The notes: generated from the letters alone by a model not told the origin. A DNA stretch of 64,000 bases from Anthoceros angustus (GCA_010909165.1 VJWM01000063.1:1550001-1614000); one strand, 5' to 3'; positions 15,601 through 59,064 are shown, counted from the first letter of the stretch. Numbers and translations are program-made.

Positions 15601-16741
15601 AAACTACTTGAGGTTATTAAATAATTAAGTACAAAGTTGAAAAGCTGCTCTACCAAAATATACTTATAAGAGAGTAATCCTATAACTCTTTTGCATGTAG
15701 CTACCTACTTTCACAAGCAATTTCTGTTCACTATATTTTTAATACAGAAAATAATTAAATTAATTTTTTTTAAATAGATGAAAGGTAGTCTTGAGGTACA
15801 TTAAATGAATTTTATTGATCTATATATGAGTTATGTATATCAAATGGTTTTTGAGACTTATTTATTCGAGAATTATTCGAATAACCATTATGCCTTTTTC
15901 ACTTCCCACGACAGGCAAAGGAATGCACGACAACGAAGGCCATGCCTTCATCCCCTTGCTATCGAGACTCTCGGGCTAAAGCAAGGATTCCTCGAGGTTC
16001 ATCAAGGCCTTTGCTAAAGCCTACCATAACCACAAGAATGACGTTGGTCTCCTCCTTTCCTTGTGGTGACTTTCTTCAAGCAACGGGTATCTATCGCCCT
16101 GCAGAGGGCATTGGCCAACGAAGTATAGAGTACGGCAGCGTCCCCCAGGACTCGTCATCTTCGGCATCAGTGGTAGGCAGGCCCGTTCTTATCCTGAACC
16201 ATGACATTCTTAGAGCAATAGGTAGTTTCAAGATGGTTAGTCATGGGGGCTACTTCCCTTGGCTGGGGTCTCCAAAGGTTGTTCCCCTTCCCTGCAAAGA
16301 AGAAAATTCCTAAGCTCCCATTGTAAATTCCCAAGTTTGTACATACTTCGGGATTGAAGTACAAAAAGCATCAAAACTAGTATAGCAGCACGGTGCGTGG
16401 AAATTAGTGGGGGACACACCAAGTTGGTTCTATTTTTCGAACCACATGGGCATGCAGATCTCGGTGAGCTGGTATTTGTGGATGCAAGAGCAACACAGAC
16501 ATTTTTTTTGGGGAATTGGTTATGCAAAAACAACGCTTATTCACTTCAAATAGCCGGAAAAGGGTCAGGCTTTCTGGGGTTAAAGATTTGTCCTATGGTT
16601 CCCGTGGTTGAGTTTCATAGGTTGCCCAGATTCTGTTGAGAATGAAAATGCAAATCAGGCGGAGCTGTGGGGGATGGCTCAGTGAGGAGTCGGAGGCACC
16701 AAAGAAAGATGCCAGCTCAGAAGGTCTGCATACTTTGCTTT

Positions 16742-33203: not shown

Positions 33204-36184
33204 TCTCGTCGCCGGCAGCACAGGCACGCCTTGCATCAATTGGATGGATCTCAGGATAGGAAGCTTGCAGATGAATTCCGCAGGATCCCCAATTTGCACT
33301 GCGATGGATCTGAATTGAAATTGTTGCTCGATGATTGCAAGGCATGAGGACGATGTCGGATTATTGGGATTGCGGGCACATGAAATTCGGTCCTTTCGGG
33401 CATTCTGCAGATGAATCTAGCCCTGGAATGGCAGCGAGGCTGGAGGATGGCAAGCTGTGGGCGCCCAGCAAAACCCCCCCGCTCCGCCTATGACACGGGG
33501 AGACTTAAGGTGGCGCATAACTGCCGTTCGTGTCCGCGCGGTGCGGCATATCGACTAGGCCCCGGATTTGTCGGGTGGCTACGGACAGTTAATTATTTTT
33601 TTCGAAATTGCATTTACAGAAAAAGGTAATTTCACATTTCTTTCAAACGGCGCGAGGCTAGAGGAGTCGGGCTGCTGTCGGGCTTCGAAGTTTGCCCCTA
33701 AAAAAGATTCTCATCCGGCGTACAAATCTCGATGGAAGGACAACGTCAGCCTTCTCCTTCTTGCAATGCATTTTGTTGATTTGACCAGGCAAATCATGTG
33801 ATGTCTTTCTTTTATTATCTACAGATTTTTTATTCTTTAGTCTTAAGAACTTATTTTTTTGATATTAAGATTTTTAAAATATGTATCGATTATAATTATG
33901 GTCTAAGATTTTGATCATAATATAGATAACAGATTTTTCTGACACCATTTTAGATTATCTAAAGCAACATGTTGTCGATTATAAAATACATCACTCATGT
34001 GCATAGTATCTTACTATTGTCATAGGAATTATAACTTATAATTCATATTTTAAAGATATTCAACCAAACCGGCTATGAGAGATACAACTTGTGTCATTCC
34101 TCTATATTAGAAGAGGAGTCCACATACATCACCAAAACATTTGTCATTTTTTTTTAAAGTAGGTGAAAACATTCACTCCCGCACATTTTGTGTTATAGCT
34201 ATGAATTATGAAAAGTTCCATTGGAAAGGGACAATGGCGTTTTTGCCACAAATGATTCAGTATAAGTAAGTTTTACATAATAATTGGACATCTAAAAGTT
34301 TAAAAAGAGGTGGAAAAATAAACCATGATAATTATATTTTAATAAAATTAGTAATTATTAATTATATGCTAAAAATTCAGTTATTGGGTTTTTTCCCTAT
34401 TTTATAAAGGTTTGTAAAAATTAGAACATATGTGGTAAGTCGTTTTTTTACTTTGTCCCTAACATATATTCATAAAGTCTCAGTGAAGTCATGCTTTGTA
34501 GAGTTTGCCTATCATTCAAGAAATAAAAATGTGTAATGTAACATTGCAAAATGATCCAAGTCCTTTATTTGCTCCTCGCAACGCGATATGGTAAATACTA
34601 TTCAACATAGCTGTGAATCTCTGCAATTTGAGAATTCTTGTCCCATAAGTGGAAATACTTAGAAATGGAAGGGAAGCCACAAAAAATGCGCATGGAGGAT
34701 GGTTACCTGACATGCTCATCCACGGCTACCGCATTAGACTTTTAAGGACCCTTCCTTAAGTACCTCGTAAGGTTGGCTACCGGAGCCAACATTCCCCAAT
34801 TTCCGACCTTGCATGGTAGGATATGAGACACCGAGTAGCTAGACTGTTCATTAGGTCCTATCGGGCCCCAAGGCAGGCCTTCGCAATTAGCTCCAACCGA
34901 AATGCAAGGTCCCTGTCCCCAAATTGCACTGTGCTTCCAGAGTCAGAGCGTCTAGCTATTGTGGAACCTGTGAAGGATTGATCAGCAAGTTTTGCAAAAC
35001 TGAGCGGTTTGGAAGTTCAAATTTGTGGGTACCAAGATATAGGGAATCACTGAGCTCCTTACGGGGAAACGAAGGTCTCCTTCAAAATCGGGTTTAAAAG
35101 GATTATGAGGTGGAATACAATTGCAAGACAAAGACGTGGTAGCCTGGGAGTACTTGGGGGCGCCGACCAGGCTGGCCCTCTTCTCCAAGCATTCTGGTCG
35201 CACCCAACTATAATTTCACTGTATGGGGTACGACTTTTACATAGCTTTAGTTGGCTCACCATGCCTCGGAAAAGGGCTATGACGCCAGAAACACAAAAGG
35301 GGCTTCAAATAAGATTTGGCTATGTAAGTATGCCACATTGCAATTGTGAGAAACTAGAGTCAACAGAAAGTTTGTGCCACTTTTTGGGAGTCAAGTGTAC
35401 ACGCGCAAGTTCCACTAAAGATGATATCGTCGGGGTCTTCACATAAGGCAAAACAAGATACGGGGTATATTATAGGTTGCCGTAAATGATCTGCATTTGA
35501 AAAAATAAAGGCTTGGGATTTCTGCTTTGAAAACTCATTAAACAATCTATGATCGGCTTTTGTGCCAATACCATGCAAATTCAAGGGAGTTGCCCGCTCC
35601 ATCTCCAAGGATCCGCTATAAACATAGTGTGTCATGCCACAAACAGACTCCGCGCAATATTGGCGGATTCTTGAAATCCTCTTTTGCGCTTTGGGTGGAG
35701 GTTGCCACCCCTTTCTCATATCATGCAAAACACGTGTTTTTAAAAGAGATGTGCTTAATGGCAGGTTCCACTTAGAACAATGTAAGTAATATCGAGGTTT
35801 TTTTCCATGTATGCACACTTTTGTTTCAGTGCGCCGGTCGTCCGGCGCACCCTTCCGAGACTTACTCTGGGGGAAAGGGCAGAGTGCCAGCACTATGGGT
35901 CCAAAACACGTAATATGCATTCAAATCAAAGTCAGGCATTTTCCACGAAGGGTCAAAAACGGGAATTATACCGGTCAACCGGACAGAGCCCCTACTGTCT
36001 ACAAGTCCTGGCTACCCAAAGGGTCATCTACTTCAACCAAATTGAGCTCCGAATCTGGCACCGTTTCTACATTTTCCAAATCCTGCCTTTCCGTGTCACC
36101 AAAGTCATCACCTTCAACCTGCAAAAGAAAACGTCGGAGCCTCTGTTGTCTGCGGTGGTAGTGTGCCGTTTTCATCCCATATTG

Positions 36185-37260
36185 TCAATGCCAGTTGGTC
36201 TTCAACCAGCCGGTCGTCCTGGGGTCTGCGAGTCCTTCATTCTGACCCTTCTTTCCAAGCAAGCTATACACTTGCATTTTCCTGTCAATGCCTCCGTCTG
36301 CACAGATCTCCTTTGCCCAAAACTTGCCAGGGCCCCGCGAAAACTTATCTGTTGTTATTTCTTCGAACTCGTCCGGCAGCCGCTCCAACCCGTTCACTCG
36401 TTGTGACATATACATTGAGCATCGTGCGTCTTTGTCAATGGCCACAACGTTCCTTTTCCGTTGAATCCGGCCACCAAAAATGATCCTGATCCTGCACAGG
36501 CGTCAACAATCCAGTCGTCTTCGTTGGAGAACATGTTCACCAACATGCCTAATAAGCCCACAGGTTTACGATATGGCGTCGACCATCTTATCACCAGTGT
36601 GGTAAATCAACTTCTTCACCACAGTCCCATGTCGGATAACTCTTGGCAGCACCTGTTTGATGTCTTTGCCGGCAAAAAGAGGAGCTTTTCCGACATTGGA
36701 CTCTGTCCTCACTGCGCTTCCCACTGTCAAATATTCCACTGTTTCAACAGCACCACTGTTAGGTGGGATGTTGGTTTTCTCCCATACCAGGGTTTGTATG
36801 ACTCCTTTCCTGCACCACGACCCTGGCGTGAATCACCCCGTCCACCCCATGCATCAGGGTTATCCGGAACACATCGCTGGTGGTCTTCTCGTTGAAAGAG
36901 CTGATGAGCTCTTTCAATTCTTCTTCAACGAAAGCCTTGTCATTCTCATGCCGATGTAAACCTCGAGGGAGGTCGCAGAAAAGAAGAGTATACCTCCTCG
37001 GTGGCAAAAATCCTTTCATATCCAAAATGTCTCGATGCACCACGATATGCCACTTTGTCCAAGACCGGGCACTCAAACCGCCACCGCATCCATGTCCTTG
37101 TCGGCCATTTGTTTTCGCTCTTCTTCCATCCGTTTCGATTCGCGCTATAAACAAAATCTTGGAAAGGTTTTGGCGAGCTTTCAAATCCTCAATGTCTCCC
37201 GGTTTACGCAAGCAGACGGTGGTCGAGAACTCATTGGCAGTGGAGTGCGCGGTCGGTGGC
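36185..37260 (-). pseudogene. Beta-class DNA amino-methyltransferase domain (N6_N4_Mtase-like), frameshifted in this sequence
   Basis: Joined across ~3 single-base frameshifts: YTLLFCDLPRG (motif IV, 36963-36974) ... VIQTLVWEKTN ... VEYLTVG ... PYRKPVGLLGMLVNMFSNEDDWIVDACAGSGSFLVAG (motif I, 36481-36504) ... RNVVAIDKD. Motif IV precedes motif I, which is the beta-class order. Confidence 0.85.
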
Positions 37261-38019
37261 CCCGCGCTATCTTGGCCGGTCGGCGGCGCACTCCACCAAT
37301 GAACCGGCGCAAACGCGGTCGCCGGTCGGCGGCGCGGTCGGCGGCGCGCGTCTTGTGCCCGGCGCCAGCTGCTCGTGGTCTTCTCGTTGAAAGAGCGATG
37401 ATCTCTTTCAATTCTTCTTCAACGAAAGCCTTGTCATTCTCATGCAGTAAACCTCGAGGGAGGTCGCAGAAAAGAAGAGTATACCTCCTCGGTGGCAAAA
37501 ATCCTTTCATATCCAAAATGTCTCGATGCACCACCGATATGCCACTTTGTCCAAGACCGGGCACTCAAGCTGCATCCATGTCCTTGTCGGCCATTTGTTT
37601 TCGCTCTTCTTCCATCCGTTTCGATTCGCGCTATAAACAAAATCTTGGAAAGGTTTTGGCAGCTTTCAAATCCTCAATGTCTCCCGGTTTACGCAAGCAG
37701 ACGGTGGTCGAGAACTCATTGGCAGTGGAGTGCGCGGTCGGCGCGCACCTGTGTCGCGGTGGCGGCGCACTCCACCATCTTATCACCGGTGGTAGTGTGC
37801 CGCTTTCATCCCATATTGTCAATGCCGGTTGGTCTTCAACCGCCGGTCGGCGGCGCACTCCACCATCTTATCACCGGTGGTAGTGTGCCGCTTTCATCCC
37901 ATATTGTCAATGCCGGTTGGTCTTCAACCGCCGGCCGGCGCGCGTTGCGCCCTCGACTCGAGAGTCGGCCGGTCGGTGCACTCTAATCTTGCCGGTGGCC
38001 GCCTATGAATACACTCACT

Positions 38020-41000
38020 TACCACTTTCGCAAAAGTTTGAACTTCGCCAATTCCTTGGCCTCGGTATGTTTGGGAAGCTGTTTGGCGACTTGAGGTGGC
38101 ACACTTCATAGCCTTCGAAGGCATGCTCGATAAGGTTAATCTTCTTCCTGCCAACATCGTATCCATATCTTTTAGCTGCGGTTTCCTTGGATGACCTTCG
38201 GGTCACGCTATCAACATCTCTTCACCTTCTCGTCCTTGGGACTCCTTGGAATGCTCTCCATGCCCTTAGAGCATTGGAGCCGACGAGGGGGCCGATTAGG
38301 GGCCCATGCTGTTGTAGTTGGGTCTTGTGGCTTCCGTTTGCTTTCGCCCGCCTGGGAGTTCGCACTTCTCCCACATCCGGAAAATGGTGTCCACGTTCTC
38401 CCACATCCGGAAAATGGTGTCCACGTTCTCCCACATCCGGAAAATGGTGTCCACGTTCTCCCACAATTTACCCTGCACCTCGCAATCCTCAGCAGTCTTC
38501 CATCCACCATCTTACATAATCGTGTCCTTGGGTTTTCCAGCCTCCTCCGGCATCCCAACTTGTACACATTGAACTTCCACCGCATGAGGTTTTCCATCGG
38601 GTGTGTCCGGTGCCAAATCTCAAGCTCATCATGTATGTAGCGTACTTGTTCAATAAAACCAAGCTTCTTCCTCTTGTCTGCATACACATTGTGATCCACT
38701 GCCAGCACCCGCATTTCTTCCTCTGTCAAGCTTGCATATACATGGCCCTCGAGCCATTGAAATTTATCTTCCGCCGGATACATTTCAGACAGTGTCTGCA
38801 TGGCGGCATAGCAATGGTTCCCTCCCAGCACCCCTAGGGTGTAATCTTTGAGCTCGATCTCCTCCGGTGCATCTTCTTCTTCAAGCACCTGTCTTTGGAT
38901 CAATCATGCACAAAAGTGGGAGCGTCCCTTCCTTCACAGGACACATGCATCAGCCGAACAAGGCACTTCATCCATGCCTCATCCACCTTCCTTATCGAGC
39001 ATCTGCGTTAGAAATGAAGCGGGCGTGAAATTGTGAATGTCGAATGTTGTGGTTTGCACCCGCTTCTTGTAGGCCCGAGCGAACCATCTCCGAGATAGTC
39101 ATCCTCCTGCGAAGGAGCTCCGGTCGTTCGGCATCGTGGTCGCCGTCCGCAACGGCTTCCTCTTGCATGCTTCCTCGACTTCCTTAATTTTTCCGCCTCG
39201 CCCACCTCTTCTCCATCACCAGCTGAGATCTTGCCTTCCTCTTTCGCTTGATTGGTGTGCTCTGCATGGAAATCAAAACAAGATGCTTCAATTCTTACAT
39301 GGTGCGGAGGCGGGGCAGTTAGGAGCATTCTTACCAGCCATTCGCCTTCTCATCTTCACTGGAGACAGGCAGTTGCGGATTCCCTTCTTCTTCTTCTTCA
39401 AGACCCCGAGGCCGAGGCGCTCCTCCTCTTCGGACGAGGAGGGTCACCTCCTCCTCAAAAGCCTCGATTCAAGACCCCGAGGCTGGACATGTTGCGAGCC
39501 ATGGCGGCCGTCGAGCTCGCCTCCGCATCGGACCACGAGGCCGAGGCGCTCCTCCTCCGGAGGCTCGGCTCGGCTCGCCACCGGAACCTCGTCCTCCTCC
39601 ATCTCCGGTTTACGCAAGCAGACGGTGGTCGAGAACTCATTGGCAGTGGAGTGCGCGGTCGGCGCGCACCTGTGTCGCGGTGGCGGCGCACTCCACCATC
39701 TTACATAATCGTGTCCTTGGGTTTTCCAGCCTCCTCCTCTTCCGGAGAGCTCGGCTCGCCACCGGAACCTCGTCCTTGGGTTTTCCAGCCTCCTCCGGAG
39801 AGCTCGGCTCGGCTCGGCTCGCCACCGGAACCTCGTCCTCCTCCGGAGAGCTCGGCTCGCCACCGGAACCTCGTCCTCCTCCGGAGAGCTCGGCTCGCCA
39901 CCGCGACTCCCCAACGAATACACTCACTTACCACTTTCGCAAAATTGTTTGAACTTCGCCAATTCCTTGGCCTCGGTATGTTTGGGAAGCTGTTTGGCGA
40001 CTTGAGGTGGCACACTTCATAGCCTTCGAAGGCATGCTCGATAAGGTTAATCTTCTTCCTGCCAACATCGTATCCATATCTTTTAGCTGCGGTTTCCTTG
40101 GATGACCTTCGGGTCACGCTATCAACATCTCTTCACCTTCTCGTCCTTGGGACTCCTTGGAATGCTCTCCATGCCCTTAGAGCATTGGAGCCGACGAGGG
40201 GGCCGATTAGGGGCCGGCACTGTTGTAGTTGGGTCTTGTGGCTTCCGTTTGCTTTCGCCCGCCTGGGAGTTCGCACTTCTCCCACATCCGGAAAATGGTG
40301 TCCACGTTCTCCCACATCCGGAAAATGGTGTCCACGTTCTCCCACAATTTACCCACCTCGCAATCCTCAGCAGTCTTCCATCCACCATCTTACATACATA
40401 ATCGTGTCCTTGGGTTTTCCAGCCTCCTCCAAAGATCCCCAAAGAACTTGTACACATTGAACTTCCACCGCATGAGGTTTTCCATCGGGTGTGTCCGTGC
40501 CAAATCTCAAGCTCATCATGTATGTAGCGTACTTGTTCAATAAAACCAAGCTTCTTCCTCTTATGCATACACATTGTGATCAATCACAAGACCCGCATTT
40601 CTTCCTCTGTCAAGCTGCATATACATGGCCCTCGAGCCATTGAAATTTATCTTCCGGATACATTTCGAAGTTGCATGGCGGCATAGCAATGGTTCCCTCG
40701 GCACCCCTAGGGTGTAATCTTTGAGCTCGATCTCCTCCGGTCTGCATCTTCTTCTTCAAGCCTTTGTCTTTGGATCAATCATGCACAAAAGTGGGAGCGT
40801 CCCTTCCTTCACAGGACTGCTCGCATCCGAACAAGGCACTTCATCCATGCCTCATCCACCTTCCTTATCGAGCATCTGCGTTAGAAATGAAGCGGACGTG
40901 TCGATATGTGAATGTCGAATGTTGTGGTTTGCACCCGCTTCTTGTAGGCCCGAGTGCGAACCATCTCCAGATAGTCATCCTCCTGCGAAAGGAGCTCCAG

Positions 41001-41480
41001 TCGTTCGGCATCTGTGGTCGCTGTCCGGGCAACGGCTTCCTCTTCTGCATGCTTCCTCGACTTCCTTAATTTTTTCCGCCCTCTGCCCACCTCTTCTCCA
41101 TCACCAGCCTGAGATCTTGCCTTCCTCTTTCGCTTGATTGGTGTGCTCTCTGCATGGAAATCAAAACAAGATGCTTCAATTCTTACATGGGTTCGAATTG
41201 CGGAGGGCAGACGGGCTGTTAGGAGCATTCTTACCAGCCATTCGCCTTCTCATCTTCACTGGAGACACGGGCTGGATTCCCTTCTTCTTTCACAGTGCCG
41301 GCTGCCCGTCCTTCGAGGAGGGTCACCTCCTCCTCAAAAGCCTCAGATTCAAGACCCACAGGCTGGACATGTTGCGAGCCATGGCGGCCGTGCTCGCCTC
41401 CGCATCGGACCACGAGGCCGAGGCGCTCCTCCTCTTCCGGAGGCTCGGCTCGGCTCGCCACCGGAACCTCGTCCTCCTCC
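38020..41480 (-). pseudogene. ParB/Srx-like domain protein with an acidic/basic N-terminus, in two tandem copies; 5' part of the MTase transcription unit
   Basis: IRKVDEAWMKCLV...LLCMIDP...YTLGVLGGNHCYAAMQTL...WLEGHVYASLTEEEMRVLAVDHN (GGNH at 38814-38825; second copy ~40690). GTAAG donors at ~41232 and ~38020. Confidence 0.72.
38366..38465. repeat. 30-bp tandem repeat x3.3 (x2.3 in the second copy at 40277-40346), in frame as WENVDTIFRM
   Basis: TTCTCCCACATCCGGAAAATGGTGTCCACG units. Confidence 0.92.
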
Positions 41481-42624
41481 ATCTCCGGTTGCATAATCCG
41501 GGCATCGTTCGACACAACCCACCGCCCGCCCGATAGCGGCGGTGCGTTCGCACCGCCTCGCCGGCCCGATCACCAGCGCGTCTGATCACTACACCTCTGT
41601 TCTTCAGCACCCCTTCAGCGGCGTAGCGGAGTAGAACGCGGCAAAATTGTTCTCCCCCCTGTTCATTTTAAAGAGGAAACAATGAGTATACCAGCATGGG
41701 GCGAAACCCTAACTGAAAATGGGAAGTGATACATGACTGACATTCAACTGACTTACATCTTGAACACTTTTGGAATCACGCAAGGCCGATTTCAACTGGC
41801 TCGCTCACAACGACGAGGCATTATCTTGGCGCATCCATTATCGCAGGAGATGTGTGTTGATGTCATCGTTTATGTGCAAATGAGGTTTCTTGGTGACCAA
41901 AAGCGTATGTGCATATCTTCGCCCATTCATCCTTTGCACATAGAATCCATCCGACTCTTGCACAGGAATCCCCTCAATACCATTGTAACCGTTAATCCAT
42001 AAGGCCGAGTGGAATCCAAGGCACTGGATCTTGGTTCTTCTTCGCAACAACGCTCCACTCTTATGCATGTTGTACCGCGGAAGAGAATCACGGAGCTTTT
42101 TCACCGAAAGCGCTCCACAAAGTTAAAAGCATGAGGAATCGCATGTGCATTTCCACCGAGGTTGGTGCTCCCTCGGCCATCAATGTCTTCATATCCTCTC
42201 CGTTGAGTACCCTTTGAGGTGGACGTCCGGACACTACCATGAGAGGATTCTCTCAATTGCATAATAGCGGTGGGGTTCTGTTACCACATTCGCGGGATCG
42301 CATCCCCTCATCCGTGCGCCCTTGCGGCGATCCTGCTGCTCTTGCGCGCGCATTTTTCCGCTTCACGATGCGTGGCGGGCGCCTCCAACGCAGGGGTCGA
42401 TCTCTGCATGCTTATTGCTCGTGGCGTCCTCGCGATCACCATCCCGCAATCTTCAAAACCTCATGCGGGAAGTTGGCGGGAGGAAGTAAGAGAATTCGTG
42501 TCCGGACTCTCGAACTCTTGATGAAAAGGAGAGGCTCGAGCTTCTGTGGAAATGAAATATGGATGTTTGAAGCGCATCAACGGATTACGATAAAGCCTTA
42601 ACACCGCTAGTTACGCTAAAGCGG

Positions 42625-45445
42625 CTCAAGTAGTAGCAGTAGGGTCCGAACACGGTCATCATTCATTTAACCTCAAATGCCTAAAATAGGCCCATTACAA
42701 ATTCGATGCATCCACCTCATCTTATGCCGTCATTTTCTAAGGGCGTGGTGCACTCTCATTCAAGGTCCATCGATGCATAGCCGTTCGCCATCGGTCCGCA
42801 TCGCAGCAATTATAAATCATCCAACACCACACGGTACCACCTTATGTCACATGTCTATAATTGTGGGTGTGACTTTGATCTTGATTCAAAGTGCGTTCTT
42901 CCCTCGCATGCAGTAGCTCTTGAAAATTTGCCGATGTTGAAGCGGTGGAAGGAGTTCTTGAAGTCAAAGGACTTGGATGCTATCGGTCGGCGAGCAGATT
43001 CCTCCCGATATGCAACACTCGGTCGGAGGCATCAACGCGCGGTTCCGGAAATGCCTATCGGCGATCAAGGTATTCAAGTTGAAGAGGAGAACTAGATGAA
43101 GGTACGTCGTGCAAACTCGTGCGAAATCGATTGCATTCAAAGGCTCTTGTGAACATGATTCCGGATGTGTGTTATTAAATCTGCGGTGCACGGCCTCCAC
43201 CACTTCCGCGATAAGCGCATCCATTCCAAAGACACCGCCTGCTTCAAGATGTTGGATTCCATTCACGGAAGTCCTTCTCCGCCAGAGCCTCGCCGTACAT
43301 CCCGACCATCCGCAAGACTACTCCTCCGGAAGTGCTCCACGGACGACACGCCGGTCGGATATGGCCGCTTGTTGGGGTGAATGCCAACTCGGTTTGCGTG
43401 TTGTATCTAGAAGATACTGTTTCCACTGGCCCACGTTCGGTGGAACTGTTGTGGAGGAAGAGGACTCGGATGATGCATTTGAACATCCACCTCCAAAGGC
43501 GTACATACAATTTGAAGCCGGTCCGAATCATTTATCGAGCATGGCGAGACCACCACGTAGACGCCAAGTAGACGGCAATCTAAAGTGCACGAGATGAAAT
43601 GTGAAGAGGTTCGTATTACCGTGATTTTCGCAAAACTGTTGTGGTAGACAATGCTTGAGGACAATAGGGAAGGCAACCTTCGAGATTTGAGGTATCGGTT
43701 CCTTAGAATGTGCGGGAGCGGAGATGCACCTACAATCCCTTTTGATGTCGATTATGAGAGCGATGGAAGGGTTAGGGTAGACTCGTTTCTTGTCGGACGA
43801 GGAAAAGTGTATTGTTGTAGAGGCCTTGACGCGTTTATTGTATCGGGTCTAGCCAGAAGCGATCGGAAACATTGCGTGGTTGCGGTCTGAGAGGCGAATC
43901 GACATCTTTGACTCTGGCGTGGATGAACCAACTGCTTATGCTTATTGCCGAGAGAATGCCAAACATTGAAGTGTATCACCTTCCGACTCTTACTCAAAAG
44001 GCGAGGTGTTTCAAGAATACAAGCAACATGTATGCGGCTCAAGTAGTAGCAGCGGTGGGTCACGAACACGGTCATCATTCATTTAACCTCAAATGCCTAA
44101 AATAGGCCCATTACAAATTCGATGCATCCACCTCATCTTATGCCATCATTTTCTAAGGGCGGTGGCTGCACTCTCATTCAAGGTCCATCGATCATAAGTT
44201 CGCCATCGGTCCATCGATGCAACCGCAATTATAAATCATCCAACACCACGGTACCACCTTATGTCACATGTCTATAATTGTGGGTGTGACTTTGATCTTG
44301 ATTCAAAGTGCGTTCTTCCTCGCATGCAGGTAGCTCTTGAAAATTTGCCGATGTTGAAGCGGTGGAAGGAGTTCTTGAAGTCAAAGGACTTGGATGCTAT
44401 CGGTCGGGCGAGCGAGATTCCTCCCGATATGCAACACTCCGGTCGGAGGCATCAGCAGTAGGTTCGGCTTGAAATGCCTATCGGCGATCAAGGTATTCAA
44501 GTTGAAGAGGAGAACTAGATGAAGGTCGTCGTGCAAACTCGTGCGAAATCGATTGCATTCAAAGGCTCTTGAACATGATTCCGGATGTGTGTTATTCGTC
44601 TGCGGTGCACGGCCTCCACCACTTCCGCACGCGATAAGCGCATCCATTCCAAAGACACCGCCTGCTTCAAGATGTTGGATTCCATTCACGGAAGTCCTTC
44701 TCCGCCAGAGCCTCCGTACATCCCGCCATCCGCAAGACTACTCCTCCGGAAGTGCTCCACGGACGACACGCCTCGGATATGGCCGCCTGGGGTGAATGCC
44801 AACTCGGTTTGCACGGTTGTATCTAGAAGATACTGTTTCCACTGGGCCGTTCGGTGGAACTGTGGAGGAAGAGGACTCGGATAGCGGTGCATTTGAACAT
44901 CCACCTCCAAAGGCGTACATACAATTTGAAGCCGGGTCCGAATCATTTATCGAGCATGGCGAGACCACCACGTAGGCACAGTAGACGGCAATCTAAAGTG
45001 CACGAGATGAAATGTGAAGAGGTTCGTATTACCGTGATTTTCGCAAAACTGTTGTGGTAGACAATGCTTGAGGACAATAGGGAAGGCAACCTTTAGATTT
45101 GAGGTATCGGTTCCTTAGAATGTGCAGGCGGAGATGCACCTACAATCCCTTTTGATGTCGATTATGAGGCGATGGAAGGGTTAGGGTAGACTCGTTTCTT
45201 GTCGGACGAGGAAAAGTGTATTGTTGTAGAGGCCTTGACGCGTTTATTGTATCGGGTCTAGCCGGACGAAGAAGCGAAGCGATCGGAAACATTGCGTGGT
45301 GCCTTCTGCAGGCGGCGAATCGACATCATGACTCTGGCGTGGATGAACCAACTGCTTATGCTTATTGAGAGAATGCCAAACATTGAAGTGTATCACCTTC
45401 CGACTCTTACTCAAAAGGCGAGGTGTTTCAAGAATACAAGCAACA
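42625..45445. repeat. ~1.4-kb tandem duplication (transposase 5' part)
   Basis: GCGGCTCAAGTAGTAGCAG at ~42620 and ~44035; copies are collinear with many indels. Confidence 0.9.
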
Positions 45446-48400
45446 TGCGGTCGTGATCTGATGTTTCTCATTCCTACTTTTGTCGACTTTGGGCTACGAC
45501 TTCCACAAGGTGAAAATTCAAGAGCAATCGGTTTGCCTTGTGCACAACTGCGATTACCTCAAGCGAAATATAAAGAGCGAGAAAAGCAGAGAAAAACAAG
45601 GTGAGGCTTGATGTGAAATTGTGTTTTGGCAATGCGTGGGGATGATGCATTTGAAGTCAAAGGACTTGGATGCTATCGGTCGGCGCGTCGATAGTCTTGG
45701 CCGGTCAGGCGCCTCGGCTATCGGTCAGCGCTGTCTGCCGGCCGAGGCGAGTTTGTGAAGTCGCGGTCGGCGCCACGGTATTCGTTATGTTCCTTCCCGA
45801 GCGCTTTATTCCTCAACGTTGTTTGGGTGATTATTTTGCGAAGCATTTGAAGGCGATGAGGCGAGGCGACTCAAGTCGAGAGAGAAAAATGCATCAAGCA
45901 CGCGTGAAATGTTATGGAGACCGGCAAAGTATATCGGGATATCCATCGACGGATGGACCAACGAGACCAGCTTCCACATTTCACGCGTTTACCCAAGGAC
46001 TGTCGGATGTAGGTTTGATCGGCGTCCATGTTGTGGGGTGCATGATTTATAACTACACCATGTCGGCGGAACTCTTCATGGCATACGGAACATCCGAACG
46101 ATGCAAACGACTATAGCCAATATCCGGATGTCATTTCAAATTACGAGGACTACTACCAAAGGTTCTTTATCTTCAACTCGACAATCTTGCAGGAGAATAA
46201 GAATGCCGCTATTCGCTTACGAATATGTTGGTAGAGCTTAAGGTTTTGAGAAGGTAAAAGTAGGATTCCTCCGGTTGGGCACACTCATGACCAGTTGAGA
46301 TGTTTTCGAGGTTTTCAAGTGCTTGCGGAAGGAAGCTTTCGTTGCCCAAACCGACCGGTATTTTGGAGAATGCATATACGCCCAAACCAAAAATTATGGA
46401 GGTGAAAGAAGTTCCGGACTTCAAAGTTTGTGTGGCCAATACCTTATGGTAAGGCGGCTATAAACAGTTCTTTGCGGTGAAAGCAGTTGCACAATATATC
46501 TTTTCGACATCGTTCAAAATAACCCGAGAAACGCGAGGTGAGCCGGACTTATTCTGATGAGGGGCAAACAATATTCCAGATGAATCTGGTCACGGACGAG
46601 GGTTTGGAGTTTTGAATAATGTCCCATCTACTCCTATTCAAGCTCGTTTGGTTCATTTGGAGGTCCAAGTAAAAAGCGGTTGCAGAGGGAGAGATCCGAA
46701 GAAGTCTTGCAAAGAATGCGTGGGAAACTAGAGGAAAACTCGGGACCCATTTGGCGCGGTGAGGATATTTGGTGGGAGGAATTCAGGTGAGCAATCGACC
46801 ATCGTGGACAAGATAGCATGTGAGCATCTTGAGGAATTGAAGACCCCTTGGCAGTAGTGCGATAGAACACATAATGAAGAGTTGCATCGCCGTTGGTTGT
46901 AGAGAGGCCTTGACGCGCTTTATTGTATCGGCCCAGCGGTGACGAGGCAAAGCGAGCGATCGGAAACATTGCGTGGTCTCGCCTTGCGACGAAGGCGAAT
47001 CAATCGACCGCAATGCCTCGGCGTGGATGAACCAACTGCTTATGCTTACAGAGAATGCCAAACATTGAAGTGTATCACCTTCCGACTCTTACTCAAAAGG
47101 CGAGGTGTTTCAAGAATACAAGCAACATATGCATGGCCAAAGACTGTTTCTCATTCCTACTTTTGTCGACTTTGGGCTACGACTTCCACAAGGTGAAAAT
47201 TCAAGAGCAATCGGTTTGCCTTGTGCACAACCCGCGATTACCTCAAACGAAATATAAAGAGCGAAAAACAGAGAAAAACAAGGTGAGGCTTGATGTGAAA
47301 TTGTGTTTTGGCAATGCGTGGGGATGATGGTGCGGTCGGCCACCCTCGTGGCCACCGGTCCGACGATAGCGTCAGGCACAACAGCGGCCGACCGAGGCGA
47401 GTTTGTGAAGTCGCGGTCGGCCACCGGCGACAGATTTATGTTGGTATCCTTCCCGAGCGCTTTATTCCTCAACGTTGTTTGGGTGATTATTTTGCGAAGC
47501 ATTTGAAGGCGATCCGAGGCACACGCGCCATCAAGTCCGAGAGAGAAAAATGCATCAAGCACCGCGTGAAATGTTATGGAGACCGGCAAAGTATATCGGG
47601 ATATCCATCGACGGATGGACCAATGAAGACACGCTTCCACATTTCACGTTGCTACCCAAGGACCGCCGATGTAGGTTTGATCGACGTCCATGTTGTGGGG
47701 TGCATGATTTATAACTACACCATGTCGGCGGAACTATTCATGGCATACGGAACATCCGAACGATGCAAACTCGACTATAGCCAATATCCAAAGATGTCAT
47801 TTCAAATTACGAGGACTACTACCAAAGGTTCTTTATCTTCAACTCGACACTGCACGGGAGAATAAGAATGCTATTCGCTTACCACGAATATGTTGGTAGA
47901 GCTTAAGGTTTTGAGAAGGTAAAAGTAGGATTCCTCCTGGTTGGGCACACTCATGACCAGGTTGACCAGATGTTTTCGAGGTTTTCAACAGTGCTTGCAC
48001 GAAGGAAGCTTTCACGCTGCCCAAACTGACCGGTATTTTGGAGAATGCATATACGCCCAAACCACAAATTATGGAGGTGAAAGAAGTTCCAGACTTCCGA
48101 AAGTTTGTGTGGCCAATACCTTATGGTAAGGCTGGCTATAAACAGGTTGCTGCAGTGAAACAGTTGCACAATATATCTTTCCAGCATCAGTTCAAAATAA
48201 CCCGAGAAACGCGAGGTGAGCGACTTATATCGTGATGAGGGGCAAACAATATTCCACCGATGAATACTGGTCACCGGACGAGGGTTTGGAGTTTTGAATA
48301 ATGTCCCATCTACTCCTATTCAAGCTCGCTTTGGTTCATTTGGAGGTCCAAGTAAAAAGCAGAGGGAGAGATCCCGAAGAAGTCTTGCAATGCGTGGGAA

Positions 48401-49173
48401 ACTAGAGGAAAACTGACCCATTTGGGCGCATGTGAGGATATTTGGTGGGAGGAATTCTGGGCTGAGCAATCAGCCATCGTGGACAAGATAGCATGTGAGC
48501 ATGCCGAGGAATTGAAGACCCCTTGGCAAACGATAGAACACATAATGAAGAGTTGCATCGCCTTGGTTGTACCGAGGTCGAGATTTTACATCAATCGTTC
48601 GGCAAGTGCCGGCGGACATGTATGTTGGAGCGCATCGACAGGATGATGCGCGGGAACAAGAAAGCTTGAGCGGCGATGTGTTGGAGATACAAAGCAGTCA
48701 CATGATTGCGGTGCCTTGTGAGCAGATCTTCGACAATCGACCATTCGGCTCGCAAAAGTTCTGGTGGACTTCCAATGTGACGCCCATTCATTAAAGTCCA
48801 TTGGTGGGTGACTAAATGCAGCGCATTTGAAGGCGGTACCTAGAGGAGATGATTTTACGATCGACCACAGCGGCGATCGTGGGGTCGCTCTCAACGACGG
48901 AGCATGAGGTTGCGGAAACACGTCGACAAATTGCTTCTTTCAGACACATTCATCTTGGCATACGGGTTTTCTCTAACAAAACAGAAGCAACTAAATGCAA
49001 GGACCAGAACCATAATACGGAAAAACATGTACGTTTTGCGCTCTGTGCAGGAGGAAGCTCCGGAACATATGGAAGGAAGGGATGCTGCGGATGATGGCGT
49101 TGCAGAAGATGTTGCATCTGAAGGCGAGGACATTGAAACACTTGATGAACATGGTTCATGGAGTTCAGATTAG
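42844..49173 (+). pseudogene. Sola-like / DUF7869-type DDD transposase, frameshifted and serially duplicated
   Basis: Reconstructed motifs: NCCGRQC; MPNIEVYHLP...GEVFQEYK...SHSYFCRLW..FHKVKI...NRFALC..CDYLK; YIGISIDG(M)DQ.K (~47607); LPKVLYLQLD(N)...ENKN (~47840); MLVELKVFEKVKVGFLLVGHTHDQVDQMFS (47940-47978; other copy ~46280). Confidence 0.8.
45220..48570. repeat. ~1.66-kb tandem duplication (transposase catalytic core)
   Basis: GTTGTAGA(GA)GGCCTTGACGCG at ~45222 and ~46895; junction microhomology GTTGTA. Confidence 0.9.
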
Positions 49174-50757
49174 TTAGTTTTTCAGTTGACCATGGACTCC
49201 TACTAGTCTTTGGTATGGAAGGTATCGCCGACCGGCGACCGCACTTCTCAGTGGATAGGTTGTGTGTTCCCCATGGACATAAACGGCTTAACCAAGTGCA
49301 GTATGGGCACACAAAATGACGGTACAACATGTAATTTGCGATTATGTTCCAAATCGCCAAAACCGTGTCTCTATTCGATGGACCTTATTTTTTAGGACAA
49401 CACATGATAAGACCGGCTCAGAAGACAAATGTTCAAACGCATCCACCGCCCGGCCCCACACTTTTTCTCAAGTTTTGGAGGAATGAATTCAAAGACAATA
49501 ATTTTTTGGCCACGTTCTTTCCGGTCCTCCGAAAAGTGGATGCCAAATTTCTTCAAAACCCGCAATAACGCATATGGTTTTCTCGGGACATGCTTTTTTT
49601 GATATGATGATGGAAAGTTTATCGCTTTTGCCCACCCATTTCAACGGAATCACCGATATTGCGCAGACTCTGTTCACAACTCTTCCTTGGCGCGATGCAT
49701 GACTAGTCATCAATTTTAACGAGATTGAGCTTCATGGAAAGCCGATCGCCATTGTAGCTATCGCCTCACATACAATCAAGTTTCATGCATTTAGTAAAAA
49801 TGGAAATGCAATTGCACTTTAACCGCCAAAGTTGTAGGAGACGGCAAACTCAACATTTAATTATCTCTAACAAAATGAAGCAACTAAATGCAAGGACGAA
49901 CCATAATACGGAAAAACATGTACGTTTTGCGCCTGCGTGGAGGAAGCTCGAACATATGGAAGGAAGGGACGCGGATGATGGCGCGTAAGATGTTGCATCC
50001 AAGGCGAGGACATTGAAACACTTGATGAACATGGTTCATGGAGTTCGATTAGTTAGTTTTTCGCTGACCATGGACTCCTACTAGTGCCGGACTGGAAGGT
50101 ATGACCGACCGACTTCGAGGATGTGGATAGGTTGTGTTCCCCATGGACATAAACTTAACCAAGTGCAGAGTATGGGCACAAAATGACGGTAACATGTAAT
50201 TTGCGATTATGTTCCAAATCGCCAAAACCGTGTCTCTATTCGATGGACCTTATTTTTTAGGACAACACATGATAAGACCGTAAGACAAATGTTCAAACGC
50301 ATCCACCGCCCGTCCCCATACACTTTTTCTCAAGTTTTGGAGGAATGAATTCAAAGACAATAATTTTTTGGCCACGTTCTTTTCCGGCCCCTCGAAAAGT
50401 GGATGCCAAATTTCTTCAAAACCCGCAATAACGTACATGGTTTTCTGGGACATGCCTTTTTTTGGATATGATGATGGGAAAGTTTACTGCCTTTTGCCCA
50501 GCAGCCCATTTCAACGGAATCCGCCGATATTGCGCAGACTCTGTTCACAACTCTTCCTTGGCGCGATGCATGACTAGTCATCAATTTTAACGAGATTGAG
50601 CTTCATGGAAAGCCGACCGTACCGGCCACAGAGCTATCGCCCTCACATACAATCTGAAGTTTCATGCATTTAGTAAAAAATGGAAATGCAATTGCACTTT
50701 AACTGCCAGGTTGTAGGAGACGGCAAACTCAACATTTAATTATCTCTAACAAAACAG
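48965..50757. repeat. ~0.9-kb tandem duplication (3' part of the element)
   Basis: TCTCTAACAAAA occurs at ~48970, ~49865 and ~50743 and bounds two collinear copies. Confidence 0.9.
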
Positions 50758-53700
50758 ATGATAGAGAATGATGTCCTAACATAGGCACTCAGCTCCGCTA
50801 AGCACCAAAAACATATAAGAAACATCAGACTAAAAGGATCATCCAAAGTTATAAGCAATGATCAACGAGAGAAGAGGAAGACTAACCTAATGTCCAAATC
50901 CTACTCGAGCGTGTTAAAGATAATGGGGCCTAGCATTAGGACACAATTCACATAAGTTAGATATGAATTGGTATGAGTGAAGCAATTACTACACATGTAA
51001 CCCTTTTGGGAGAGTATACTACTGGCCTACATCGCTAGACATTTTTAAAACCCATATTTCATTGGATATCCAAAACCGGATGTAATCAAGGTAAAAAGTT
51101 ACAATCGGGATGAGAGTTACCATCGAGACGAGAGTTACAACCCCAAAAGATTCGGAATGACTAACCCCAAAAAGGAAGGTTACATCAGGTAGCCGCGCCC
51201 GCAAGCCGACCAAGCGCAGCTAACTAACGAGTAAATCGGCAAATTATGCGGAATTTTGTTCACCTAGTACTAATGAAATGGCTAGATATTGTTCTCACAA
51301 ATATAAGGTTATCACAATCTGACAAACATGCGAACAGTTTTTTACTTCTTTGGCAGCAACTCTATGACGTTCAATGAGTCGACAAGAAGCTGCTCCACAT
51401 ATATATATGGCTTGATTAAACGAGCTCCACTATATTGGACAGAGCCAGTGTATCTGGGTGGACTTTGGGGTGGAGGGGTCCTCGGGATCTAAAGCAATCA
51501 GCACGATCTCATAATTCCGGGCCCAGGCAGAAAATATTATATGAGCCAGAAATGATAAGGCGCAATATTTTATCGGCGAAAAAGGGTCCCAATCAACGGG
51601 ACGGAGCAGCGGCGGATTCGGCACACGGAACGGGCGGGCCCGGGGTCTTAAAAGGCCAGGAGCACGCGGAACGAGTCCACCGCCTCGGTGGCCCGGCCCC
51701 GTTCGCATTTTCTATTCTCAGATTTTGCATTTGGTGTCAGATATTTCCGCGCTTCTCAAAAACGCTAAAAGCTGGCCAGAAAACCAAGCTTGCTTCTTCC
51801 ATTTTCTAGTCGTGTGTCATAAGTTATATGCTTTTGCAGGACGGGCAGTGCGGCCAAGTGCGGCTTCTGGGAGCTCGCAGCCCAGCATCTGTGGTACATA
51901 CACATGTAGATATGTCTGCAGGAAATTGTTGCTTTTGCTGCACACGATAGTACCGCAGTTGACTACAAATTCTGCTTTCTTTTCTGCACTGGCAATTTCC
52001 AGAATCTTTCTAACATTACCTGGTCTGTCAGGCAGCTCCCTATCACATATCTCACACCTCGGAGCTCGCACGGCCGTCATCAATGGGACACGACTATTGA
52101 AGGAGTTTGCTGTAGAGTTCAAAGCCGGAGACCGTTCAGTTCGGCAGGTGGCCGAGTTCCAATGCAGATTGTAAGCTCCTTTTAAGGGGGTACATAGTGT
52201 AGATGGTGTGCAACAGACTTCACTGTAGCACTGCTTGTCTGTGGGGTCATAGCAACAGGGTAACTGCTGTAGGCAAGAGCTTCAACCCTTTACAATGTCG
52301 GGTTCTGTGATTTGGCTGTATCTGGATCAAGGTATTGAGGTAATCAGCCATGCAAGAGACTGTGCCTGGACAGGGGCACCATGCTGGAGATCTTGCTACA
52401 GTACTGCCCGTCGGGTTCTAACTTCTTGGCATGACTCTTGGCATAATCTCCTGCACATGTCACCGTGAGCAAGAACCTTCCGTTCAGTTACTGGAAGTAC
52501 ATAGCCGCTTCAAATGTATCTGATACCTGGATCAGCTTTTGTCATTTGCAAGCAAGAAACCGTGCGTTTTGTGACTGGCCAATGTGCCCGCTTCAAAAGT
52601 TTCCGGATCAGATTCTGCCATTGTGAGCAAGCACCTTTGCTTTGAACGACAGGATGTAGCTGCTTCAATTGTTCCGGAAGCAACCTGATCCATCACTCGC
52701 GACGACAAAAACAAACCGGAAGCATATAAGCCAGGGGCGTTGTCCGTGCTAGCCTTTCACCAACAACTTCTGTCCACAGATGGAGGCATTCACCATCCTG
52801 AGCCATACATGAATGCATGAATATATATATATTAAAAACCTGGATTTCACACAACAACAAAACATGTCCATGTTAGGATTCTAGGAAGAAAAGAGCCATG
52901 TCGAGTCCGACTACATATGTACATAAATCCCCTGGAAGAAGGAAACATCAGGGACACATGCTGCAAAGCAGTTGGAGGCCAAGTGCGGACACGGCATGCC
53001 GCTGCCGCTGCCGCTGCCACTGCCGCAGTCACACATACTGTATAAAAATACGCAGGGAGCAAAGCCTCAAATCCTGCAACAACTCCTTCGCAAAGGACAA
53101 GCCCGGAAGATGCTTGGCACCGGTTCTGAACTGGCCTCATTAACGCCTCCCGTTAAACTCCACTTCCCAGTCAGACGCTACAGAAACAAGCGCACAGACA
53201 GAGCAACCGGGAGAGACGTCACGGGACGTGATGAGCAGACTGTTAGGCAGGCAGGCGGCCAGCTAATCTCCCTGACAGCGGACAAATCCCTTGTGCCGGA
53301 ACCGGCAAATGGAAGCGACAAAGCACAGTCTGCTCCATCCGCAGCGGCAGTGGCAAACACTGTGCACATCCATTAAAAAAAACCTCCGAAAACATCGTAT
53401 CACTGTCCAGTAAAACACAATCCAATCCATCTCTGCCTTCTCTTCGCCCGTCATGCAGCATGCTCTCTGCAATCTGCATCGCCGATGCCGCGCTCCGCTC
53501 GGCCCCACAGCCTGCCTGGCTCCACGATGTGCCGCATTAACCAGGCGCGGCGGGTGTCAGACGCTGTCACTCTTCAACCACGGCAAGTGCAGCCTCTCCC
53601 GGCAAGTGGAAAGCAGCACTGCAGCGGCAGCAGGCCATGAGTCGATGATGAGGCAAGCAAACTCCATCAATACAAACCGCGAGTGCGCTCCCGACGAGCC

Positions 53701-55683: not shown

Positions 55684-57369
55684 TCATAGGGCCATCACCT
55701 CGAGCTTGGGCTTCTTGTTGGAGGCAGGCGAAGACGAGAAGTCGAGCAGCACGGAGTTGTGGCACCTTGGGCACTGCGTCTCCTCCTTGGACAGCATCAC
55801 GTAGATGAAACAGTTCTTGCAGCACTTGAGCGTCACCGGCGGCGGCGGCGGCGGGGACGAGCCGAGCCCCAGCCCCAGGTCGTGCGCAGCAGACGAAGGA
55901 TGGCTCGGGGACGACGACACGTTGCTGCTGGAGGAGACGCAATTCGCGTTCGCCCCTGGGGAGGAAACGCGGTAGGTGCAGGCTGCGGCGGCTCCCACAT
56001 TCTTGGAAGAGCCCGACCCCCGCTTCCTGCTGCTCCTGCCCGCAGCAGCCCCGTCGGAGAGGTCGTGGGAAACGGAGGGCGGCGTGGAGGAGGAGGCGGA
56101 GGCGGAGGCCGAGGAGGAGGAATCTGAAGGCGACGCCGGCTGCAGTGATCTGGACCAGCCCGGAAGCGCATGCTGCTGCTGCTGCTGATGCTGATGCTGA
56201 AGGAGTCTGTTGCCGAACATCTTATTCCCCGAGGAGGTGGTGCGGAACAAGGCTTCCCGCACCTTCTCCATGCTGGTGCACACGCTAGCGCTCTTGCCGG
56301 CGTCCTTGAAGGGAAAGGGGTCGGCTCCGCAGCTGCTGAGCTTGAGATCCAGATGGGAGCCCGCTGCCATGACCATGGCGGAGTCGACAGGGCCGTTGCT
56401 GCTGTCCCTCCTGAAGCGTGACTCCGTGTGTTGATGGTGGAGGTGGTGATGCTGCTGCAAGGGATTCCGCTCCGAGAATCCCCTGGCGGCGGCAGCCCAG
56501 TGCTCCAGCGCCCAGGGAGCAGGAGGCGGCGCCGCCTCCGCCATCTCCGTGGACAGGCAGGAGCCCAGACACAGACCCGAGCCGGCGCTGCCATCGATGG
56601 TCGCCCGAGGGGACGGGGACGGGGAGGCGGAGGGAGATGCCGCCTTGCTGCTGGCGAAGAAATTCACCGCCGGGGGCGGGGTGGTTGCCGGGCCCGGGGA
56701 ATCCGAGCTCCCATCCGCGTCGTGCGAGCTGGGCGTGGCCGGCTGCACGTGCTGCTTCTGGCGAAGATCCACGTACGTCTTGGACCCGGTGCTGCGATTC
56801 TGGAAGAAGACCGCCCCGGACTGCACTCACAGCAACGACAGATGAGGCCCCGCACATTCCTGTAGGCGCATTGCGCGGAAACGAGGCAATGCAAGCTTGT
56901 TGCAAGAGGAGAAGAAGGGAGAAGAAGGTAATCTTACCCGCAGGTCGAGGCACTTCTCCCAGCCGGCAGGGACGAGCCAATTCGGCTCCAGCTCCAGAAA
57001 CCCCGCCTGCACCTGCTGCTGCTGTTGTCGTTGTTGTTGTTCCAGCTGCTGCTGGAGCTGCGTTGCCGGGGAGATGCCCAGCAGGTCCAGCGTCTCCGGG
57101 ACCGGGACAGGGACTTGGCCGAGCATGAGCTGCACCGCCTTGTGCAGGTCCTGGCCCCACCCGCGCTTCTTGCTGCCAGGGAGCAGCTGCAGATGCTGGG
57201 CCGCGGCCGCCTCCGGCAGCACGTCGCTGCACGCGCCCGAGGTGGAGCTGGAATCCGCCGACTTGCCGCTGCCGCTGTTGCTGCTGCTCTGGTGCTGCGT
57301 CTGGGCTGCCACAAATTCCTTGCCCATGCTCCGCCACCCGCTGCCCCCCAGCTCCATCACCACAGCCAT
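55684..57369 (-). CDS. CFL1: CURLY FLAG LEAF 1-like transcriptional regulator (WW domain, EAR motif, GIR1-type zinc ribbon), 522 aa
   Basis: Exons 57369-56938 and 56820-55684 (phase 0). WW: VPAGWEKCLDLR|SGAVFFQNRSTGSKTY; EAR: HLDLKL; C-terminus LKCCKNCFIYVMLSKEETQCPRCHNSVLLDF. Confidence 0.9.
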
Positions 57370-58316: not shown

Positions 58317-59064
58317 TGGAGCTTTCCGCCTGGCAGCCGCTGCCCGCCTGATTAAATTCCCCCGTGTAAACCCGACTTCCAACTCCCGTCGCAAGAAACG
58401 TTTTTACTAGCGCGGCTCGGACGCCTGCCTTGGCCATGGCACGTTGCTGGCGGCACATTTTTCAGTTTCACGCCGTCTCCTCGCCCCTGTACGTATGCGA
58501 TACCAGGGCACGTACAAATACAGCCCGGCATTCATTGCGCGCCGGATTCACCTTCTGCTCTTCCGCCATTAACTCCTGCTTTTCACCTCCTGGCAGCTCA
58601 TGGCTCCGCCTTTTTCATCATTTCCGCTTATCCTTTTCCTTTCCCACCTCCGCCCCCATTTATGGACGTCTTCCTTCTTTTCTCCTCTGGCCATGTTGCT
58701 TTCTGGATCGACACATGTAGCAGGCCCTCCTCCACCAACCTCACCTACTGAATGCTGCGTAAAACCTGGCCCAAATTGAAGTGCACTTACTCGCACTTAC
58801 TCTTCCTTCTTCAAGGCTCACCGCCGACCTCCACATCAAGCCACATTTCTATAATCACAATCACAAAAAGCTCCTTCCCCGATCCCCCTTTCCCGGGCTT
58901 CATTCACTCTCTTCCGTGTCTAGCAGTCTTCTTGCTTAGCCTGCAATTGAGTGCTGGTCCTTGAGGTGTGACCATATCGGAACCAGAGATTTGACCTCTG
59001 CTTTGAGGTGTAACTATTCACGACTGGGTTGAGGTGGAACTCTATTTGGAAGAGAGTTTTCACA

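Follow-up and report, generated by a model that had tools for sequence, protein, structure and literature searches.

Transposons of the Sola1 superfamily carrying a gene for a putative DNA-modifying protein have been described in the brown alga Ectocarpus, where the 21.5-kb element Sola1-1_Ec32 bears a ParB-like/N4C-N6A methyltransferase gene opposite its transposase; proteins of this sort have been proposed to attach to the transposon that encodes them and to modify it (Dinatale et al., Genome Biol 2025, PMC12477816). The best blastp match of the Sola1-1_Ec32 transposase is a Sola1 of the moss Physcomitrella (PMC12477816, supplement), a plant in which the superfamily has been recorded (Bao et al., 2009, as cited in PMC9033089 and PMC4455052). 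In the current study, we describe a block at 34.7-50.8 kb of a 64,000-nt stretch of the Anthoceros angustus genome (VJWM01000063.1:1550001-1614000; hereafter the window, from whose start all coordinates are counted), which is probably a copy of a Sola1-type cut-and-paste transposon with divergent transposase and ParB-like/amino-methyltransferase genes, and whose size was probably inflated by assembly. The element is real and belongs to a known kind, here found in a new group of hosts, the land plants, and its catalytic motif is odd.

The transposase of the Anthoceros copy has the motifs VDN..ENKN and VGHTH.Q.DQ.FS.F in common with that of Sola1-1_Ec32, the 282-bp imperfect terminal inverted repeats of the Ectocarpus element are comparable in size to a weak inverted region of ~230 bp in the window, and their accessory proteins can be likened on the basis of the published description. 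On the other hand, the Ectocarpus element reaches 21.5 kb and encodes an accessory protein of 1104 amino acids (aa), whereas the window copy collapses to ~9-9.7 kb, has a land plant instead of a brown alga as its host, and reads DLPR in motif IV of the methyltransferase. Neither AACCG...CGGTT termini nor a 4-bp target-site duplication, as in Sola1-1_Ec32, could be recovered in the window copy. Within land plants, the Physcomitrella Sola1 belongs to the same transposase superfamily as the one in the window. The two-domain architecture of the accessory protein is also found in streptophyte proteins (Chara GBG86584 and about 10 paralogues; Adiantum MCO5585897 and MCO5611298), with ParB-like domains 26-41% identical to that of the window, the same order of methyltransferase motifs and, in Adiantum, a common C-terminal LxxLPDEF block; these relatives keep an aromatic residue in motif IV (DLPY in Chara, DAPY in Adiantum), unlike the window.

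Other described systems share parts of this organization. Red-algal Plavaka elements carry the accessory genes PAG2, encoding an N6A methyltransferase with a SET domain, and PAG3, encoding ParB with a 2-oxoglutarate (2OG) oxygenase (10.1101/2025.02.11.637652). Like Plavaka and the ParB-methyltransferase fusions of phages and bacteria, the Anthoceros element would combine, on one mobile element, a ParB-type DNA binder and a DNA-modifying enzyme whose substrate may be the element itself; it differs from Plavaka in the transposon superfamily and in the domain combinations, the Plavaka domains being on separate proteins, and the inverted-repeat arrays neighbouring PAG3 were not found in the window copy. 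Chlorophytes and chytrids have ParB-helix-turn-helix domains fused to Dam-type methyltransferases (Iyer, Zhang and Aravind, 2015, PMC4738411), which likewise combine a ParB-type domain and an adenine methyltransferase in eukaryotes, but theirs are group-2 (Dam/DpnM-like) enzymes while that of the window is a beta-class N6_N4_Mtase. Prokaryote-type amino-methyltransferases in eukaryotic genomes are also exemplified by MpDN4MT1a/b of Marchantia and N4CMT of bdelloids; unlike the gene in the window, these are host genes with shown N4-methylcytosine (4mC) activity, and the MpDN4MT1 paper mentions neither a ParB domain nor a transposon origin.

The pairing of Sola with a ParB-like methyltransferase, which a first-pass annotation of the window had proposed from the sequence alone, was already in print for Ectocarpus. 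For plant Sola1, no mention of a ParB-like/methyltransferase cargo was found in the literature searched, outside of which lies the original 2009 description of Sola1. With no published report found of this cargo on Sola1 in a land plant, the Anthoceros locus adds a new host record.

Transposase and accessory gene

The block contains a head-to-head gene pair, with the transposase on the plus strand and the accessory gene on the minus strand (Table 1), an arrangement that the first-pass annotation had read correctly. The predicted transposase is homologous to Sola1 transposases, and its Sola1-type assignment is made because three collinear Pfam DUF7869 matches are accompanied by signature motifs common with Sola1-1_Ec32; the Sola/DUF7869 label given earlier to the plus strand thus holds. 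The three DUF7869 pieces are read in three different frames and sum to ~107 bits, and the gene as assembled, which two overlapping tandem duplications inflate, encodes an acidic C-terminal tail before its stop, which follows 49170. The best-preserved catalytic core presents the motifs ISIDGWTNE (47610-47624), LQLDTARENKN (47837-47872) and VGHTHDQVDQMFSRF (from 47943), while a first, more broken copy of the core belongs to the duplication 45223-46907 / 46896-48577.

The comparison with Sola1-1_Ec32 was made by eye on short motifs, not by formal alignment: its transposase holds MMDGANQ, VQVDNTVAENKN and MMVGHTHIQIDQIFSCF, and the window has ISIDGWTNE, LQLDTARENKN and LLVGHTHDQVDQMFSRF in identical order, LQLDTARENKN pairing with VQVDNTVAENKN and LLVGHTHDQVDQMFSRF with MMVGHTHIQIDQIFSCF. 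The aspartates in SIDGW, LQLDT and QVDQ, which correspond to those in MMDGA, VQVDN and QIDQ of Ectocarpus, are candidates for a DDD triad by motif position. A word-index protein search with a 188-aa transposase piece gave no match, an Atlas look-up of the same piece returned no family, and the term DUF7869 was absent from the literature in a text search.

Table 1. Coordinates of the features of the putative Sola1-type element, in window positions.
Feature	Position	Strand	Remarks
Sola1-type transposase gene, as assembled	42781..49173	+	Open reading frame pieces, DUF7869 matches, motif comparison with Sola1-1_Ec32
Best-preserved catalytic core	47487..48232	+	At least 4 frame changes; motifs and C-terminal part of DUF7869
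First, more broken core copy	45831..46450	+	DGWTN 45948-45962, ENKNA 46193-46207, GHTHD 46277-46291
DUF7869 match 1	47708-47896	+	Pfam E 1.6e-7, profile 26-78
DUF7869 match 2	47907-48026	+	Pfam E 4.3e-13, profile 90-124
DUF7869 match 3	47966-48232	+	Pfam E 1e-5, profile 119-181
ParB-like exon-like piece	38505..38903	-	133 aa, uninterrupted; GGNHC 38811-38825, DHNV 38685-38696
Second ParB-like exon copy	40410..40583	-	Partial, frame-broken (KRKKLGFIEQVRYIHDELE); within duplicated block
Beta-class amino-methyltransferase domain	36188..37061	-	Four frames; Pfam, alignment with Chara and Adiantum, tblastn, motifs
Second motif IV copy (DLPRG)	37451..37465	-	Within tandem duplicate 37371-37777
Left arm, candidate (sub)terminal repeat	35470..35700		Weak, patchy inverted similarity; 29-nt core 35642-35670
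Right arm of the inverted similarity	49600..49822		Core 49656-49674; repeated at 50480-50702 (core 50517-50545)
Duplication 1	36876-37298 / 37371-37777		93.7% identical; 12 gaps vs 5 substitutions
Duplication 2	38007-39610 / 39916-41490		90.1% identical; 52 gaps vs 20 substitutions
Duplication 3	42621-44030 / 44034-45447		92.9% identical; 44 gaps vs 16 substitutions; short-read depth zero at junction
Duplication 4	45223-46907 / 46896-48577		87.2% identical; 77 gaps vs 65 substitutions; short-read depth zero at junction
Duplication 5	48967-49875 / 49861-50754		89.3% identical; 40 gaps vs 24 substitutions

On the minus strand, the accessory gene is predicted to be a single gene for a protein with a ParB-like and a methyltransferase domain. 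The Adiantum protein P0009 (674 aa) is collinear with this strand in tblastn, matching the ParB-like region at 38852-38625, the motif IV region at 37028-36822 and the C-terminus at 36466-36329, and both domains occur in one protein in Adiantum P0020 and in an uninterrupted Chara open reading frame of 902 aa. In the methyltransferase domain we recognized the motifs DLPRG (motif IV, 36960-36974), VWEKTN (36770-36787), PYRKP (36562-36573) and AGSGS (motif I, 36481-36495), all on the minus strand, with a LERLPDEFEE block at the C-terminus of the domain. Motif IV lies upstream of motif I, the same order as in Chara and Adiantum, and the domain is assigned to the beta class because of this order. 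A piece of 70 aa (36397-36606) matched Pfam N6_N4_Mtase (PF01555) with an E of 2.8e-5 and 24.6 bits, just below the cutoff of 26.7 bits, which its homologues passed (Adiantum P0020, E 1.1e-10; Chara open reading frame, 29.8 bits). Moreover, 634 phage records, labelled as DpnA-, RsrI- or adenine-specific methyltransferases, matched the Chara methyltransferase domain at 26-29% identity, and the fold of the window methyltransferase is homologous to that of the DpnA/RsrI-like enzymes of phages. The beta-class methyltransferase proposed earlier for this strand is thereby upheld, and profile searches with the proteins matched N6_N4_Mtase and DUF7869.

The catalytic motif itself departs from what is expected of this class. 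The canonical motif IV, (D/N/S)PP(Y/F/W), is absent from the domain in the window, where both tandem copies read CDLPRGL in place of FDLPYGF in Chara and ADAPYGF in Adiantum, that is, D-L-P-R with an arginine in the aromatic position. In amino-methyltransferases the aromatic residue of motif IV normally stacks on the flipped base. Because arginine replaces this residue, the DLPR motif casts doubt on catalysis by the predicted protein, whose activity may be lost or altered. As assembled, the domain also contains at least three frameshifts.

An exhaustive HMMER search with the 133-aa ParB-like piece retrieved only 22 relatives among 1.84 billion representatives, and the named ones came from Chara braunii, Adiantum nelumboides and the hemichordate Saccoglossus. 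The family domain is carried by Saccoglossus kowalevskii XP_077861518.1, and Atlas additionally points to clusters from sponges and molluscs. The ParB-like domain is thus widespread in eukaryotes, probably on mobile elements. In Chara braunii, the sequence BFEA01000570.1 contains two ParB-like/methyltransferase units about 26 kb apart (10001-12843 and 35782-38487), which the gene model GBG86584 (1825 aa) merges; the second unit is the single uninterrupted open reading frame of 902 aa mentioned above. With regard to possible binding sites, no parS-like palindrome arrays were found in the element: palindromes are not enriched there (7 per 16 kb vs 23 per 48 kb in the remainder of the window), and neither the surroundings of its ends nor the region between the two genes holds recurring short motifs. 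Within the accessory gene, downstream of the ParB-like exon, lies a perfect 30-nt tandem repeat (38366-38465, 3.3 copies), found again in the other duplicate (40277-40346, 2.3 copies), and further arrays consist of a perfect 38-nt repeat (39812-39903) and a near-perfect 88-nt repeat (37757-37940).

Tandem duplications and the state of the assembly

The tandem duplications reported by the first-pass annotation are present in the block, and together the five of them contribute 6,384 bp. Once they are collapsed, the block as originally delimited measures ~9.7 kb, and ~8.9 kb remain between the inverted regions, giving a collapsed length of ~9-9.7 kb. The description of the element as giant does not hold at this length, and the duplications look like assembly artefacts. 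Duplications 3 and 4 overlap by about 220-225 nt, a segment that is present three times, and in duplication 5 the C-terminal end of the transposase and the subterminal region on the right occur a second time.

The 16-kb size, the duplications and many or all of the frameshifts probably stem from overlapping, unpolished and deletion-prone long reads, strung together within a repeat that the assembler failed to resolve. All five pairs of duplicates together differ by 225 gap events vs 130 substitutions, with a transition-to-transversion ratio of 63:67, whereas 21 gaps vs 357 substitutions were counted in diverged repeats from other parts of the window. Each duplicated unit begins just upstream of the end of the previous one, the units being adjacent or nearly so. 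Short-read contigs, which came from a single DNA run containing the sequence and were compared over about 6 kb, differ from the window by 0-2 substitutions and carry 7-11 extra letters per 114-165 nt, with 93 indel places inside the 6 kb and a short-read depth of zero across both junctions in that stretch, those of duplications 3 and 4. Besides, the reading frame shifts cleanly at the breaks inside the DUF7869 and methyltransferase domains, none of whose motifs is lost. The noise is local to the repeat, because the host open reading frames of the window, of 611-714 aa (PPR-E, RING/Zn_ribbon_19 and glycosyltransferase), are intact.

If the sequence were instead correct as assembled, the block would be a truly dead copy in which local tandem duplication occurred on five separate occasions before many small indels accumulated, a scenario that we regard as rather unlikely. 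The duplications are plainly present in the window, duplication 4 has 65 substitutions at only 87% identity, and the short-read contigs may stem from paralogous copies of the family, an origin that would count against the assembly explanation. The same holds for two limits of the comparison, namely that the control repeats in which substitutions prevail consist of coding PPR motifs, and are hence an imperfect control, and that holes in short-read coverage prove nothing. Nonetheless, the gap-to-substitution ratio among the duplicates is 1.7:1, while in neutral plant DNA the ratio of indels to substitutions is roughly one tenth of this. The ratio of transitions to transversions is ~1, not transition-rich as expected for methylated transposons, and the start of each unit just upstream of the previous end is the pattern that arises when overlapping reads are concatenated. 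Contigs with zero substitutions and yet 7-11 extra letters, as well as intact host open reading frames of 600-700 aa in the same window, also speak against a decayed copy.

Under the explanation by joined long reads, the window cannot show whether this copy is dead, and its frameshifts are therefore no proof of death; the size and breakage of the copy are largely explained by assembly error. Outside the element there is another adjacent duplication (18692-20005 / 19996-21317), 98.3% identical with 12 substitutions and 10 one-base gaps, nine of them in homopolymers, which may be an assembly join of the same kind.

Element limits, remote domain assignment and alternative origins

The candidate limits of the element are given by a weak and patchy inverted similarity of ~230 bp, whose core matches at 26/29 positions (E 0.001, blastn-short) and which was also recovered by local alignment. 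At 34700 and 50760, where the first-pass annotation had placed the ends, there is neither a terminal inverted repeat nor a target-site duplication. The AT-rich flanks described there were confirmed on the left, where a block at 33780-34690 adjoins the element, and not on the right, where the flank is not strongly AT-rich (GC 0.42-0.47). Other AT-rich blocks occupy 13000-16000 and 59000-64000 and, like the left one, have a GC content of 0.31-0.36, compared with ~50% for the rest of the window. The tetranucleotides that would form a target-site duplication at the candidate ends do not match (TTAT at 35470-35473 vs CCAA at 49826-49829).

Several results weigh against the identification of the block as a Sola1-type element with a ParB-like cargo. 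Terminal inverted repeats and a target-site duplication could not be defined from this single copy. No DUF7869 was found within 10 kb of four Chara ParB-like/methyltransferase loci rich in N runs, and on the two metagenome contigs L003 and L004 the accessory gene stands alone, without DUF7869, so that the co-occurrence of the modules expected in other genomes was not observed. Furthermore, the 133-aa piece of the window has no Pfam match, and hence no Pfam support for ParB, profile searches against PDB with two ParB-like alignments gave no match, and four fold searches (Foldseek against PDB twice, VIA wide, and Swiss-Prot in the AlphaFold database) with two AlphaFold models returned no ParB. 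These models of the ParB-like domain reached predicted local distance difference test (pLDDT) values of 66.7 and 79.9 and a predicted template modelling score (pTM) of at most 0.48.

The ParB-like label of the first-pass annotation consequently survives in part, on signals that are faint but recur. PHROG phrog_1033, 'ParB-like partition protein', was matched by 10 of 56 family members (best E 0.0011), other families being matched by at most 2, and DUF6551 was matched by 3 of 21 members (E 0.027). The language-model (Atlas) neighbours of the piece carry DUF3723, ParB_N or DUF6551, and the Atlas shape search gave weak matches to a ParB_N cluster (TM 0.41) and to DndB (0.38). ParB-like is thus the likeliest remote assignment of the N-terminal domain, a weak one that is not established.

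The occurrence of the accessory gene without a DUF7869 neighbour at the Chara loci and on the metagenome contigs indicates that the family is not tied to Sola1 alone. In addition, Logan contigs from another organism (L005-L008, about 5.5 kb) contain a gene for a ParB-like protein of 165 aa beside an OTU-protease gene, and this protein belongs to a cluster whose 61 members are spread over many contigs, which suggests that the domain also rides a different mobile element. Metagenome scans with the ParB-like and DUF7869 pieces gave no matches, the alignments being too diverse as queries. These occurrences, together with the missing shared termini and target-site duplication, would suit a chance adjoining of two unrelated relics, one a Sola1 remnant and the other a ParB-like/methyltransferase remnant of another element or a former host gene. 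We consider such a coincidence improbable, given that the same opposite-strand arrangement is published for Sola1-1_Ec32 of Ectocarpus and that the weak inverted repeat brackets exactly the transposase and the accessory gene.

The block is surrounded by host genes with long open frames, which place it in a plant nuclear context: a RING-H2/Zn_ribbon_19 protein (8610-10655, plus strand), an alpha-1,4-glycosyltransferase (Gb3_synth/Gly_transf_sug; 24956-26788, plus strand), a GIR1-like zinc-ribbon protein (55684-56823, minus strand) and a RPAP3_C protein (63260-63937, plus strand). An intact gene for a PPR protein of 714 aa that has an E motif is also present in the window (5634-7778, minus strand), and the similarity of 4-872 to 6613-7481 (~76% identical), like the repeats inside the PPR gene, reflects diverged PPR-type repeats. 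A bacterial or phage contaminant, or a recent horizontal insert, might be suspected from the phage/bacterial type of the methyltransferase fold, but the probability of such an origin is close to nil: the block is embedded between plant nuclear genes, its nearest named relatives are the streptophyte proteins of Chara and Adiantum, and the accessory gene is paired with a eukaryotic transposase. Bacterial contamination was accordingly rejected on the flanking plant genes and the streptophyte relatives.

RNA contigs overlap the block only at 42813-42943. There, a 960-nt contig of the RNA-labelled run X2 (depth 148) matches over ~109 nt and continues into unrelated sequence, and it may be the transcript of another family member or a chimera. 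That the accessory gene is a domesticated, functional host gene instead of cargo appears very improbable, since it stands here head to head with the transposase, has at least three frameshifts in its methyltransferase domain as assembled, and no RNA run is listed as containing it.

Possible function and significance

For a transposon of this type, the predicted transposase would excise and reinsert the element, while the accessory protein could dock on the DNA of the element through its ParB-like domain and either methylate adenine N6 or cytosine N4 there or merely bind. Adenine N6 would be a likelier target than cytosine N4, because motif IV has an aspartate and the phage relatives are adenine-specific; in this plant, the DLPR form of motif IV raises the prospect that the protein may only bind. 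The proposal of the first-pass annotation that the transposon marks itself with N6-methyladenine (6mA) or 4mC, and could serve as a vehicle by which plants acquire amino-methylation, stays inferential and is weakened by the DLPR motif. There is a slight chance, based on a shared fold class, that the DLPR family has an altered activity, as a non-catalytic reader or binder or with a changed target base, or that it was the source from which land plants obtained host amino-methyltransferases like the sperm 4mC enzymes of Marchantia.

The idea of self-marking and the pairing with Sola1 were already in print for the brown alga, and what the present copy adds is a host record from the land plants, a non-canonical motif, DLPR, that both tandem copies share, and a warning about assembly. 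Noisy reads joined end to end can inflate copies of the family in this assembly, and any interpretation of large size, internal rearrangement or dead frames in such copies should be preceded by a check against the reads. An active family would represent a eukaryotic transposon equipped with a DNA amino-methylation module of its own, which would bear on the ways in which host silencing is evaded or shaped by transposons and on the origin of the 6mA and 4mC enzymes of eukaryotes.

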